Of a stretch of DNA of 64,000 nt, positions 1,670 to 7,341 are shown one piece after another. The notes below the pieces were generated by a model. The model saw only the letters and a program-made list of their open reading frames with translations, was not told the origin of the DNA and ran no database searches. A program made the position numbers and the translations under genes. Numbering within the stretch: position 1 is the stretch's first letter; each line of letters begins with the position of its first letter. The DNA is from Tubulanus polymorphus (taxonomy: Eukaryota; Animalia; Nemertea), in contig NC_134030.1 of the NCBI RefSeq assembly GCF_964204645.1, positions 5,250,778 through 5,314,777 of the forward strand, given 5' to 3'.

Positions 1670-4561
1670 CTCATAATCTTCCGTTTCAAAGAAAGGCACA
1701 TACTCTTCGGGAGGTTTCTCTTTTTTTGGTGGTTTCTTCGTCTCTTCCTTCGGTTTCGATACCGATGGCTTTCTCTTCGTCTCGGGTTTCGGTTGTTCTT
1801 TTTTTGTCTGCGGTTTTGGCTTCGCGCCAGGTTTCACCATTTCAATAGTGATCAAGTAACTGCTTTCACCCTCATCAAAATCTGCATTCAATATCTGAAA
1901 AAGTTTAAAATATTCGTTTTTAATTTTCAGTTACAGGGGCCAGTTGCACAGTCATGGCTTACATCCAAAAATGGTCTTAAGATCTTAAGACTGGTCTTAA
2001 GACCGTCTTAAGACCGAACTCCACAGTAATGAGTTAAGAAATTGTTAAATAATAAACTGATTTTTACTCCTTTGAGTCAAATGTAAACATGAACTGTGGC
2101 ACTGGGTCCTGAAGACTTGTAAAAGAAATAACTTTCAGTTAGCCAACATGGAATAAACCTAAAAAAATTCATATTTACAAATATATGAAAGGACGATACT
2201 ACATGGTAAACCAAACAGCATTTGTTACAATATCAAAATTTCTCCCGAAATGTAACCATAGAATGCAAGATATAATCAACTATTTTCAACTGAATAAAGA
2301 ATGTTAACTTACTTTTCCAATTTGTGGTTCAGAAATGGCAGCTTTGAACGACTGATCTCGCTTGCAGTAATCGATCAAATGAGCATAAACATGTGACAAT
2401 TGTTTCCTTAATTGACCTACGTATTGAAACGAAGATATCGCAAATATAGATGGACTACCACTGGCAGATAACTTTTTAAAATACGTTTCAAAATCGTTAT
2501 CTTACCATTTCCAGGACTGACTGGCATAAGGGTAGGACCGTTTCCATTAATAACGTCCGCTGCTGGTTTTGGCGGTGCTTGAATCGCGGCGGTGGCTTTC
2601 TTTTTCATATCTTCCACAGCCAGGCGGACATCTTTAACGGTCATTTCATGAGTTTCATCGAGTTTCTGGCGAGAAAGAATCTCATAAGAATGAACTACGC
2701 AATTTCACCGCTTTCAAATTTCCCAACATCATAAACTCATGACTCATTTTTTTGACAAATTTTTTTATTTATTCATTTCATTTGGGGCACCCCCTGGTAG
2801 TCTCTAGACTTGGGGGTATCCTCTCAGTTAATTAAATTCTGTCAGCGTATTGAAATTATTTACGTATCTATTGAAAAATATAATTCATTCATTCATAGAA
2901 ACATTATCACATTATAAAACGGACGGACAAATTTGTATCAACAATATCTCAGTAGGTCGTAGACTATACCTGCATCACTTGATTAGTAACAGCCCCAAGC
3001 TGTTTAGCAGTAACTGCACCACCACCACCACCAAATCCACCTCCGGTAGCATTCGGATCTCTCTTCAACGTCGCGGCACCGTTTGAGACAGCGAGCTCCG
3101 TAATCATCTCGGGCGGCATACCCCACAGATTGATCTGCGTGCCCGAATAATTCACCGGATTGAAAGGCCCATCGACTGAACGAATTAAATGTATAAATTG
3201 AATCAATTAAACTGATTAATAGGACAAGTGGATAATTTCAATCAAGATCGATCATTTCTTACCATCATTGTTACCCTGAGTGTCCATCGCTCCCCATACA
3301 TTTCGTCGTTTCGCGGGTTCGAGTGCCAACATCTTTTTATCTTTATCACTTTCATCGGATTTTTCCTTATCCTCTTCTTTTTCTTTCTTTTTATTGTCTT
3401 TCGCTTCATCTTTCTTATCATTCGGTTTAGGAGCACCGGCGGTGACTTTCTTTTTAGGCGGGTTTTTCTTTTCTGGTTTTTTCGAGTCATCCTTCTTCTT
3501 TACATCTTCCTTTTTCGAAGCCTTCTTTGTATCTTTCTTTTTCTCATCGTCCTTATCACTTTTGCTCTTTTTGTCCTTTTTCCTATCCTTGTCGTTCTTG
3601 CCTTTTTTCTTTTTATGATGATGATCATCATCATCACTATCACTCTCACTCTCACTGGAGCTACTACTGCTGTCACTGTCTTTTTTATGTTTTTTCTTAT
3701 GTCTTCTTTCTTTTTCTTCTCTTCTTTTCTGTTTTTCTTTTTTCTCCTGCAAAATAAAAATTCATCATTCTAAATGATTTGAATTCACTCAATAGAACTA
3801 TGTAGTCCCGTGGCCAGACCGAGTATTAAGACATTATAAACGATGAAATTTCCTGAGAGTTTGCATCGCCGTTGCGATTGAGGCCTACCTGTTTCTTTGC
3901 TTCCCTGAGGCTACGTCTGAGACTGTCGCTGCGTTGTTGCCAAAAATTAATTTCCGAGTCCGACGACCACTCGGAGCTGGATGACAATTCTACAGTGTTG
4001 ACGTCATCCAAACCAGCAAAAAATTTATCGAGTTCAGACTGAGGATTCTCGACTTGGAATGTTTTCGTAACTACAGCACTTTCCTTGACACCATCACTGC
4101 AAAGATAGATATAATTGAAAATATTCATGTGGCTTAAAAAAGAAAAATGACAAGTAAAATATGAGGCATTTAAGGACTGTTTACTCAGCTACACACACCT
4201 AGACATTGCCAATGCTCGTACAGTTCTTCTTCCAGGCTTCAACGTAAAAGGACCTTTATATCGGAATGTTGTTTCCTTTCCACCGGGAGCTCGAGGTATG
4301 AATGGATCAGGACGAGATCCATCAGTCGTGAAGTACAGTTTACAAAACAATGTATCTGGAAACAAATTATAATTCATAGTTTCAAAGCTTAAATAGATCA
4401 CGTTATAAAGGATATCATAGTTTACTTTCAATTCATATCTAATACATACCGATATCAAGTTTAATCAGTGTGTCTGTGGAAATGTGATTTGATGGTTTAG
4501 AAAAGTCGGGCATCCGCAATGGCGTTATAACCGGCGGGGGAAGTGCACCGGCGGACGGCAT
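1670..4561 (-). CDS. DZANK1-like N-terminal region (Fn3-associated domain, K/D/E/S-rich linker, second DZANK1-like block); probably spliced in frame to the annexin
   Basis: Exons 4561-4450, 4355-4199, 4096-3889, 3746-3263, 3175-2970, 2665-2506, 2416-2313 and 1894-1670 total 552 codons with all phases consistent. MPSAGALPPPVITPLRMP...LYFTTDGSRP...TFRYKGPFTLKPGRRTVRALAMS...SAVVTKTF and VSPGNGQLRKQLSHVYAHLIDY...FKAAISEPQIGKILNA resemble recalled DZANK1 segments. Confidence 0.85.
1934..2111. mobile_element. PIF/Harbinger-like MITE
   Basis: Imperfect TIRs gggccagttgcacagtcatg / catgaactgtggcactgggtc with CWG flanks and internal gtcttaaga repeats. Confidence 0.6.
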
Positions 4562-4676
4562 CTTGTGACTAGATCTATCTAAAGTTTAGTTCCTGAACTC
4601 AGTGAGTTCTTGTTCGGGGGCTTCAAACTGAAATGAAAGATTGGAATTATCGTTTTGATTCTGATGATATCAACAA

Positions 4677-5067
4677 CGAAGTGGCTACTCGTACGGACCC
4701 GTACGAATAATTCCATAGGCTATTCGTACGCACCCGTCGGATAACTCTGGAATTATGTGTACGGGAAGGGATATGGTTAGGGTAAGGTGAGACTATATCT
4801 AGTTAAAACATTCGACCGACTGTCAGCGAGCTCGGTGGTCTAGTGGTATGATGCTGCGCTAGTAATTTACTGGCCCGGGTTCGAGTCTCGCTCTATCCGC
4901 TATTTTTCTCTAACTCTATTCTCCACACTTTCCTTCAAGTCGTGCACCTCTATACGCATGCGCGGCGTTAATCGGCCAATCAGCGACAGTTATTAGCGTA
5001 CAGATCCTAGTCCCGTACGAATAGCCTCCAGAGTAATCCGTACGGGTCCGTACGAGTAGCCACAGCG
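4677..5067 (+). mobile_element. MITE with 9-bp TSD (Mutator-like) carrying a tRNA-derived cassette, copy A
   Basis: TSD tatcaacaa at 4668-4676 and 5068-5076. TIRs are about 54 bp with a 25-bp perfect stretch gtggctactcgtacggacccgtacg. It lies in the 5'UTR intron of the DZANK1-like gene. Confidence 0.9.
4829..4907 (+). pseudogene. tRNA-derived (Thr-like anticodon loop) Pol III cassette, non-canonical cloverleaf
   Basis: A-box TGGTCTAGTGG at 4836-4846, loop CT-AGT-AA, B-box GGTTCGAGTC at 4878-4887, T5 at 4903-4907. The acceptor and anticodon stems do not pair. Confidence 0.75.
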
Positions 5068-5223
5068 TATCAACAAACAAATGGTCGGTGTCATGTCAAA
5101 AGAATGCCAATTTTAAAGTGCCTTTTTTACTTTGAATCAACATGACCAAGTGGAAAGATCGGGTAATAAGTTGCAGAGATCAATAAGAAATAGTTTTCAG
5201 TTCAGAAAATGACACATTCTTAC

Positions 5224-5523
5224 CCGAAACACGTCGAATAATGTATTTTTCTCAATTTTTCGCTCGTTTCTAAAAAGTTGTTTATTTCAGTTGTCAGGAG
5301 AAACGATCGCGGAATTCACTCGCAAAGCATCAAAACGCGGTCACAATCTGGACTCGATCGCGGCTAATTAAGCCAATAATAAGTCCATATCCATGATTTA
5401 TATTCTGGCACGCGAGGGTTAGTGAATTCTACGCTAGCTTTTAACTCGACAGGCGGCGCTTTCGTCGATTATTCCTGAATTTTTGCAAATTTTTCCAGTG
5501 ATTTTTGCGTCGAATCTTCAACA
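5224..5523. promoter_or_regulatory. Probable bidirectional promoter (DZANK1-like/annexin and PFDN5)
   Basis: Minus-strand donor gg|gtaaga at 5224/5223 matches an acceptor near 4628. The PFDN5 ATG is at 5524. The interval is CpG-rich and contains a CCAAT box. Confidence 0.55.
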
Positions 5524-7341
5524 ATGGCGGCTCCGAATCAAGTGGATATAACGCAGCTTAATGTTCAACAGTTGAGTCAATTATCACAACAACTGGAACA
5601 GGTATGTAAAATTCGATTACTGATCAAATTTCTGATTTATTACCTTTTTTAGGCCGTCCCCGTCCACCGTCGTCCCACACCATATACCCATTTTCTTTTA
5701 CAATAATTCTTTTATTGTAGGGCTCGTCAATGTTTACCCCTAGTATCATTTGAACCGTAGTTTTATCTGTGAACACCTACAGTTTTGATAATGCGTAGGC
5801 CGCAGCTCATGCATTTTGTTCATTTATTTCAGGAAATTAGCTTCTTCACAAATTCTCTAAAGTCACTGAAAATGGCTCAGCAGAAGTTCAACGAATCGCA
5901 GGAATGCCTCAATTCAATGAATGAAGAATCAAAGGACAAGGAAGTGTTAGTGCCATTAACAGGATCTGTATCCTTTTATATGAGTTGTCTATTAAGATAT
6001 TTGGTTTTTAATCCATAGTCCTTGTTAGTCATTTTTGGAACAAAGTGGATATTTAACCATTTACGGCTAAGTATTTACTTCCGCCATTATACCGTACATT
6101 ATTACTATATATATATAGTATTAACTAATAAAACTAACAATAAAATCATTATATTGGGTTTAGGGTTAGGGCTTCGATAGGGTTAGTGTTGAGAGGGTGA
6201 GAAGAGGGTCCAGAGGGTTCCGTTTTACCCCTAGGGATAGGATTAGGGTAAGGTGAGGTATTATACATAGTTAAAACATTCAACTGGTTTTCAGTGAGCT
6301 CGGTGGTCTAGTGGTATGACGCTGCGCTTGTAATTTACTGGCCCGGGTTCGAGTCTCGCTCTATCCGCTCTATTTTCTCTAACTCTATTCTCCACACTTT
6401 CCTTGAATTTTCGCGCACCTCTGTGCGCATGCGTGGCGTAAATCAACCAATCAGGGACGATGTATGGTATAATAGTGGAAATAAATACTCGGCCGTATAC
6501 AGTAAAATATCCACTGCATTTTTGGAAAGGAATTTGATATCAATAATCTACAAATTCACTTATTTCTTGTTGTCGGAATACTGGGACCATTTCCACGTTT
6601 CGGTCAAATATTTGAATACCTCAACCATGTATTCAATTCTGAACCAACAACTGCACAATCAGGTGTTGCTTGATTAGGGGTATTTCCTTGACAGTAATAA
6701 ATAGATGTATGTACCAGGAACTCTTAGCAATGTCACTGATGTACTCGTGGATGTAGGAACTGGTTACTATGTTGAAAAGGTATTTATTGCTGAATCATTG
6801 AACAACAAAAATGCAAAATCGAGAGTCAAATGTTGAATCTGTGGTTGCAATAATCTACATATCAATAACTTATAGCAATTCTTCATTTCCAGTCAATTGA
6901 AGGCGGTAAAAAGTACTTCAAGAGAAAAGTTGAGTTCATTACGAAACAGATTGAAAAAATACAGCCTATTCTACAGGAGAAAGCTAAAATGAAACAAGGT
7001 AATTGTAATAAACTGCTTGGGCAATGACAATCATTATCAAAATAAATCTAAAACTTAACTTAACTATTTTTATTCAGTTGAATTGTCATCGTTGAATTGT
7101 TATCACTATATTTTAATCCCAATTGGTATTTGAAATATAAGTCATTGACATAATGATCGTCCCAGCGCTGATGTCTTACAGAGATCGACTAAGAAACCTG
7201 TACTGCGGTACATGATATTTTCCTAAACTTCACTGATTTTGGTTTTTTTCGCTTCTTTTTGCAGCTGTTATGGAAATCTTGCAGTTGAAAGTTCAAAGTC
7301 AAATGTCCCAGCAGCAACAGCAAGGAGTGGCTCGTACCTAG
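5524..7341 (+). CDS. PFDN5: Prefoldin subunit 5 (156 aa)
   Basis: Exons 5524-5601, 5833-5967, 6705-6779, 6893-6998 and 7265-7341. Motif EVLVPLTGS|MYVPGTL...VLVDVGTGYYVEK. AATAAA at 7591. Confidence 0.97.
6041..6518 (+). mobile_element. MITE with 9-bp TSD (Mutator-like) carrying a tRNA-derived cassette, copy B
   Basis: TSD tttttggaa at 6032-6040 and 6519-6527. Imperfect TIRs of about 59 bp are unrelated to those of copy A beyond the termini. The core of about 215 bp is shared with copy A. Confidence 0.88.
6297..6376 (+). pseudogene. tRNA-derived Pol III cassette, copy B
   Basis: A-box at 6304-6314, loop CT-TGT-AA, B-box at 6346-6355, T4 at 6373-6376. It differs from copy A at 2 positions over about 74 nt. 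Confidence 0.75.

Follow-up and report, generated by a model that had tools for sequence, protein, structure and literature searches.

A tRNA-gene-like interior shared by MULE-type MITE families with different terminal arms in the nemertean Tubulanus polymorphus

Two transposable elements of the miniature inverted-repeat kind (MITEs), here called A and B, lie close together in a 64,000-nucleotide (nt) stretch of the Tubulanus polymorphus genome, hereafter the window. Our main finding is that they carry nearly the same interior, a core that includes a decayed tRNA-gene-like unit, within terminal arms that differ almost entirely in sequence, and that the same core occurs within further types of arms elsewhere in the genome. 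We consider it probable that A and B are non-autonomous MITEs of the Mutator-like element (MULE) kind, that the core is a passenger, that family A arose by replacement of the arms, and that the inserted copies decay neutrally. Coordinates are positions in the window unless a sequence label precedes them, and genome-wide counts refer to the 268-Mb assembly.

Direct reading confirmed, as the initial annotation of the window had claimed, that both elements are bounded by terminal inverted repeats (TIRs) and flanked by perfect 9-bp target-site duplications (TSDs), at the positions collected in Table 1. The TIRs of the window copies span 55 nt in A (85% complementary) and 56 nt in B (82%), and a long direct repeat is common to the two interiors. 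Neither element contains an open reading frame longer than about 55 amino acids, and both are therefore classed as non-coding. A first look at the genome gave at least 470 candidates for the core of A, at least 323 for the left part of B and at least 504 for its right part. Pattern counts put family A at about 50 copies (45 to 60, with lengths of 389 to 400 bp) and family B at about 300 (437 to 493 bp); two segments of the core have 150 to 165 close genome matches, the figure for one of them, a 33-nt module with the NRF1/CCAAT motifs, being 150. The 90 loci that were fetched represent 74 distinct places and yielded 23 full copies of A and 22 of B. Mean identity to the consensus is 97.0% in A and 90.1% in B, and A is thus the younger family.

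The consensus ends, CGAAGTGG...CCACWGCG, are the same in the two families, and they are asymmetric: the left end reads CGAAGTGG and the right end, as reverse complement, CGCWGTGG. The likeness of the extreme ends that had been annotated therefore stands, with the correction that CAAAGTGG and TGCA at the ends of the window B copy are private changes relative to the family consensus. Flanks of 9 bp match with at most one mismatch at 70 terminus pairs, against none when offset flanks are used as a control. Reconstruction of empty sites (n = 45) gives an AT-rich and roughly palindromic target, T-W-N5-W-A: G or C is found in 0/45 cases at TSD positions 2, 8 and 9, and position 1 is T in 31/45, on a background of 39% G+C. 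Both families thus have the features of MULE MITEs, namely a 9-bp TSD (the range of the class is 8 to 11), TIRs, small size, no coding capacity, multiple copies and homogeneous length.

Attribution to a DNA transposon of the Mutator/MULE kind, already proposed from the sequence of the window, rests on these 9-bp TSDs and on MULE domains located inside or beside A-type ends. A 23-nt pattern of the A terminus has 108 matches in the genome, and a search of the assembly with the Pfam MULE domain (PF10551) gave 56. Candidates for a MULE transposase with such ends, which the initial annotation had suggested looking for, were located by their coordinates on C1, C4 and C9. Inverted A-type ends at C1:20094175 and C1:20102021-20102043, 7.87 kb apart and identical at 21/23 nt or more, enclose PF10551 matches of 67 and 31 bits. 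Only two more matches, of 63.7 and 64.3 bits, belong to this score class: one is situated 1.1 kb inward of a terminus at C4:17669626, the other at a distance of 3.6 kb from a terminus at C9:8495656. Among the A-type ends listed, none is near any of the remaining 52 MULE matches. The distance from terminus to domain is similar on C1 (0.9 kb) and C4 (1.1 kb), and the chance expectation, for 108 termini and 56 domain matches in 268 Mb, is about 0.2 pairs within 4 kb. As far as coordinates go, the case for a MULE as the mobiliser of family A is good.

The strong conservation of the interior noted earlier is borne out by the family consensuses, in which the core extends over 229 bp (positions 91-319 of consensus A against 193-424 of consensus B) at 93% identity. 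It starts with a TTAGGG-like sequence and comprises a tRNA-like unit with about 55 nt upstream and about 100 nt downstream; an A box, a B box, an oligo-T run, an NRF1-like palindrome and an NF-Y-like box were each found in it where they had been annotated (Table 1). On a 111-nt stretch, the Rfam tRNA model aligns 71/71 positions (4829-4899), with a score of 11.9 bits where 29 is the threshold. This alignment places the D, anticodon and T loops, and most stems are broken, with many non-pairs, in agreement with the initial view that the stems have been lost. ARAGORN and Rfam at normal settings detect no tRNA in the elements, and the unit folds no better than shuffled sequence (z-score -0.63). 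The ARAGORN result, the sub-threshold Rfam score, the broken stems and the fold z-score together exclude a functional tRNA gene.

The unit shares its box sequences with real tRNA-Glu and tRNA-Pro-like genes of the T. polymorphus genome, the A-box string being identical, and its D-arm string matches that of the Pro-like genes. At the anticodon position, the consensuses of both A and B have AGT, and a further type of element, D, described below, has AGC. A threonine identity, proposed at the outset, finds no support, given the AGC of type D and the Pro-like D-arm string. Nor is any meaning supported for the contrast of AGT in A with TGT in B, since the B consensus has AGT and the TGT of the window B copy is a private substitution. 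The spacing of the A and B boxes is normal, and a run of five T (four in B) begins 4 nt past the unit. Two other tRNA-related sequences were observed. The interval C1:31284231-31677682 contains a repeated tRNA-like sequence with the same A and B boxes and another middle, with four copies or more inside 0.4 Mb, which is possibly a separate tRNA-derived repeat family; and a genuine tRNA-Arg(ACG) gene is present at L014:2468-2542, about 0.7 kb from an A copy.

A core of this composition could have entered unrelated MITEs by independent insertions, either as a tRNA-derived short interspersed nuclear element (SINE) or as a tRNA-headed telomeric passenger of a Penelope-like element. The TTAGGG-like start of the core and the longer degenerate TTAGGG tract of types B, C and D are consistent with such an origin, and human MER6 shows that parts of a SINE can enter MITEs (PMC6887750). 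We nonetheless hold it to be most improbable. The run of four to five T would stop RNA polymerase III (Pol III) ahead of the remaining core, so that the whole core does not have the build of a SINE. TIRs and 9-bp TSDs bound every full copy seen, and none has a SINE tail; a core occurring mostly without TIRs or TSDs is what the initial annotation would have taken as the sign of an ordinary SINE. Pattern searches saw no core start within telomeric arrays, and no match with three TTAGGG units 30 to 60 nt before the A box. Moreover, the right-hand boundary of the core is the same to the nucleotide in A and B, and an intermediate core variant, GTTAATCAGCC, is found in both A- and B-type copies. The shared boundary and the intermediate variant favour an origin of the A interior in an older lineage, and speak against independent SINE insertions.

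The consensuses of A and B align solely at their 8-nt ends and over the core. Beyond the first 8 nt, the arms of A and B reach an alignment score of 12, against a shuffle mean of 12.2; aligned as inverted repeats, the consensus arms score 67 to 82 (shuffle mean about 12.8). In the fetched flanks, the core was found within at least two further arm types, C and D, which brings the total found to four (A, B, C and D) and supports the earlier claim of one interior common to different TIR frames. Types B, C and D share an interior of about 330 bp, about 105 nt more than A, which includes a degenerate TTAGGG-like tract, and their arms are weakly related to one another (p about 0.01). The orientation of the core relative to the AA/CW asymmetry of the ends is identical in A, B and C. 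A short palindrome occupies approximately nt 13 to 30 of the arm in all types (that of A is given in Table 1; B, CCGTATACGG; C, CCGGATCCGG), and a GCTATT motif is found near nt 42 in A, B and C, so that the architecture of the arms is conserved even where their sequence is not. The TIRs had been described as unrelated: this holds for A against B beyond the first 8 nt, and fails for the common 8-nt ends, the left/right asymmetry, the palindrome and GCTATT, and for the weakly related arms of B, C and D.

Additional TIR types were considered in L011, L015, L023 and L024 and rejected, as the long outer inverted repeats there belong to other elements. Inside the outer repeats of L011, L023 and L024 lies an A copy that is complete and has a TSD of its own, and in L015 the A copy has a truncated right arm. 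Inverted pairs of B-type termini only about 180 bp apart were observed at C8:6515987-6516169 and C7:12732231-12732408; elements of this length are too short for the core, which is thus not required for a B-type element. The type C element is adjoined, at L070:2024-2113, by a near-perfect 90-nt hairpin repeat that is probably another palindromic MITE. Rfam matches in L070 (MIR807, RUF1 and mir-1788) were dismissed as hairpins of this neighbouring palindromic repeat, far below threshold.

We propose the following history. A MULE transposase encoded elsewhere would recognise the shared 8-nt ends (left, CGAAGTGG; right, as reverse complement, CGCWGTGG) and probably family-specific subterminal sites as well; the element would be cut out and re-inserted at a T-W-N5-W-A target, with repair of the staggered cut producing the 9-bp duplication. 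The 229-bp interior would be a non-coding passenger, made of flanking sequence and of a tRNA-gene-like Pol III unit that is decayed and has a T run of its own, and would already have been present in an older MITE lineage, as the roughly 330 bp common to B, C and D suggest. Family A would have been born when new arms came to enclose a part of this interior that had been truncated on the left; these arms match the ends of a still recognisable MULE-bearing element, and recombination or template switching during gap repair is a likely route for such a replacement. Once inserted, copies would decay neutrally.

It is very unlikely, in our view, that the core is instead native to autonomous MULEs, for example as their promoter or 5' region, with each MITE family an internal-deletion derivative and the core conserved by constraint within the autonomous elements. 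The layout, in which the left arm and the NRF1/CCAAT-like motifs are followed directly by the right arm, is that expected if a gene body had been removed, and the MULE domain starts about 0.9 to 1.1 kb from the terminus. However, the listed matches with at most 2 mismatches include none inside C1:20094175-20102043 for a 40-nt segment with the B box, for the 33-nt NRF1/CCAAT module or for the inner A arm, so that the core is not just a part of the element located there.

Within families, conservation is flat: the boxes, the core and the promoter-like motifs are no better kept than the arms, and in family B the tRNA-like part stands at 0.88, against 0.91 to 0.95 for the arms. Individual insertions thus look neutral. 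This contradicts the initial annotation, by which copies should show the A and B boxes conserved in excess, and which had named the absence of such an excess, beforehand, as a refutation. A different picture emerges between the founders of A and B, where the tRNA-like part differs at 1/71 positions against 18/161 elsewhere (Fisher p = 0.009); this hints at constraint on master copies. A passive passenger does not predict the founder contrast, and the idea that the core is selected cargo thereby stays alive at low probability. The core would then be a Pol III/TFIIIC plus NRF1/NF-Y cassette that may give rise to a small RNA, an insulator or open chromatin, and would be kept for amplification or host use while the arms are free to change.

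Although unlikely, selected cargo would also fit the presence of the core in four arm types and its possession of an A box like that of real tRNA genes, a normal spacing of the boxes and a T run 4 nt further on. A second family member lies within about 3 kb at 10/74 sampled places, where about 1 is expected, which shows that insertions cluster; this too would agree with selected cargo, as it could reflect a preference for open regions. Mu-type elements prefer open, gene-proximal regions, and the clustered insertions fit this habit. The flat conservation, the existence of B-type elements of about 180 bp without room for the core, and the shortness of the motif matches all tell against a selected core. 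We also find it distinctly unlikely that the tRNA-like unit and its NRF1/NF-Y-like flank form a portable amplification module, kept or repeatedly moved among otherwise unrelated MULE arm sets.

Several observations, the founder contrast among them, weigh against our proposal of a passenger core, replaced arms and neutral decay. The link to a transposase is one of coordinates, and the open frames around the domain matches are only 148 to 396 amino acids long, so that the MULE-bearing copies may be dead. Both ends of the autonomous candidate are of the AA type, against the AA/CW ends of the MITEs, and no near-perfect B terminus was found near any MULE match. The negative results for the C1 interval cover the listed matches up to 2 mismatches. 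Finally, we infer the pairing of transposase and family, any Pol III activity, and the route of arm replacement.

Some copies are embedded in other repeats. At L063:910-2352, an A copy is nested in the TIR of a B copy, with the TSD TACGGTTAA. Another A copy is found at one and the same target, TTGATTAAA, within flanks shared by four chromosomes (L008, C11:12.91 Mb; L016, C8:14.30 Mb; L021, C5:1.21 Mb; L026, C2:3.46 Mb); the target is intact in L008 and L016 and retained at 7/9 positions in L021 and L026. This copy evidently entered a larger repeat that later multiplied and carried A along. Three copies of the core at C4:8950730, 8958350 and 8965970 have the same single substitution and are spaced by exactly 7,620 bp; from its coordinates, the series resembles either a tandem duplication or repeats of a larger unit that holds the core. 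Two B-type elements of 409 bp with perfect ends, at C9:12189982-12190390 and C9:12202205-12202613, are 12,223 bp apart and are probably part of a segmental duplication.

The initial annotation placed the two elements on either side of a bidirectional promoter. Two divergent start codons, 4561 (minus strand) and 5524 (plus strand), do flank element A; element B, however, is intronic in a prefoldin-subunit gene. The prefoldin exons, searched one by one, match positions 5-47 and 50-73 of the Pfam Prefoldin domain. Introns, neighbouring genes and base composition mark the genome as eukaryotic, and it is not human.

Table 1. Parts of elements A and B, further arm types and neighbouring genes
Feature	Position	Strand	Remarks
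Left TSD of element A, TATCAACAA, 9 bp	4668..4676	.	Direct reading and TSD scan
Element A, copy of MITE family A, 391 bp, non-coding	4677..5067	+	Consensus 399 bp
A left arm	4677..4766	+	End CGAAGTGG; palindrome TCGTACGG-AC-CCGTACGA at nt 13-30
Shared core, A version	4767..4987	+	8-bp deletion relative to consensus
tRNA-gene-like unit of A	4829..4899	+	A box 4836-4846, B box 4878-4888; stems decayed
T5 run of A	4903-4907	+	Downstream of tRNA-like unit
NRF1-like palindrome of A core, CGCATGCGC	4955-4963	+	Direct reading; motif likeness only
NF-Y-like box of A core, CCAATCAG	4976-4983	+	Direct reading; motif likeness only
A right arm, ending CCACAGCG	4988..5067	+	
Right TSD of element A, TATCAACAA	5068..5076	.	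Direct reading
Left TSD of element B, TTTTTGGAA, 9 bp	6032..6040	.	Direct reading and TSD scan
Element B, copy of MITE family B, 478 bp, non-coding	6041..6518	+	Consensus 484 bp; in prefoldin intron
B left arm and leader	6041..6232	+	TIR about 6041-6100, then AT-rich spacer
B leader part common to types C and D	from about 6135	+	
Degenerate TTAGGG-like tract in B leader	6157-6186	+	
Shared core, B version	6233..6458	+	tRNA-like unit 6297-6367
B right arm	6459..6518	+	Ends CCACTGCA; family consensus CCACTGCG
Right TSD of element B, TTTTTGGAA	6519..6527	.	Direct reading
Type C element	L070:2116-2555		440 bp
Type D elements	in L053, L032, L003		
Putative first exon of divergent gene	4436..4561	-	ATG 4561; 116 bp from element A; reading and translation
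Prefoldin-subunit gene	5524..6779	+	Exon 1 starts at ATG 5524
Prefoldin exons flanking element B	5833-5967 and about 6708-6779	+	Each searched separately

In their 9-bp TSD, TIRs, AT-rich target and lack of coding capacity, A and B are similar to MULE MITEs and Pack-MULEs. As in MULE MITEs, the ends (those of A type) are common, by coordinates, to an element with a MULE (PF10551) domain, and as in Pack-MULEs, the interior is foreign and not of transposon origin. Unlike classical Mu/MULE families, in which the long TIRs are conserved and the interiors vary, A and B share their interior and differ in their arms; and whereas Pack-MULEs carry gene exons as cargo, that of A and B is a tRNA-gene-like, non-coding unit. 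The unit recalls tRNA-derived SINEs and tRNA pseudogenes in being tRNA-derived and in having kept its A and B boxes intact while its stems decayed. SINEs have a LINE-type or simple-repeat tail and variable TSDs and lack TIRs and a Pol III terminator within the unit, whereas A and B have TIRs, a TSD of fixed length and no tail, and in these a Pol III terminator directly follows the tRNA-like part.

A pattern of this kind has precedents, and a claim to the contrary does not hold. In the CMITEs of Acropora corals (Wang et al. 2010, PMC2872659), families resemble one another more in their interior than in their TIRs, and only a short terminal motif is kept in all families. CMITEs are piggyBac-related elements of about 100 bp with TTAA TSDs, TIRs of 13 to 14 bp and a 75-bp interior of unknown origin in which no tRNA-like unit was described; transduplication and a part in transposition were both put forward in that study (PMC2872659). 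A and B are like CMITEs in that the interior exceeds the arms in conservation between families and a short end motif is kept, a resemblance of pattern and not of ancestry; they differ from them in being MULE-type elements of 400 to 480 bp with TIRs of 55 to 60 bp. The MER6/MER6A elements of primates (Luchetti et al. 2019, PMC6887750) are composite MITEs with the ends of a DNA transposon, of the Tc1/mariner type, and an interior derived from the body and tail of a SINE without its tRNA head, and they have a single type of TIR (PMC6887750). A and B are likewise composite MITEs, and differ in their MULE ends, tRNA-like unit and several arm types. They combine the CMITE-like and MER6-like patterns in a MULE-type family and add a tRNA-gene-like unit; in the literature, we found no description of a MULE-type family with this combination.

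MITE families are normally defined, and clustered by annotation pipelines, by their ends, whereas here the interior is constant and the arms are exchangeable. The A/B group therefore offers a test of how MITE families are born, by replacement of arms or as fresh deletion derivatives, and of whether the interior matters for amplification, a question left open by the CMITE study (PMC2872659). The genome seems to have kept a transposase-bearing partner, so that the problem can be approached. If the unit were indeed a portable module, binding of TFIIIC/Pol III and of promoter factors would keep master copies accessible to the transposase or steer insertion towards promoter regions that are open, and the target of selection would be a MITE's interior and not its ends. 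In any case, a pair of Pol III-type boxes with NRF1/NF-Y-like motifs has been spread to about 500 sites, some of them in promoters and introns, and is thus a candidate source of regulatory variation in Nemertea, a phylum with almost no transposon annotation.

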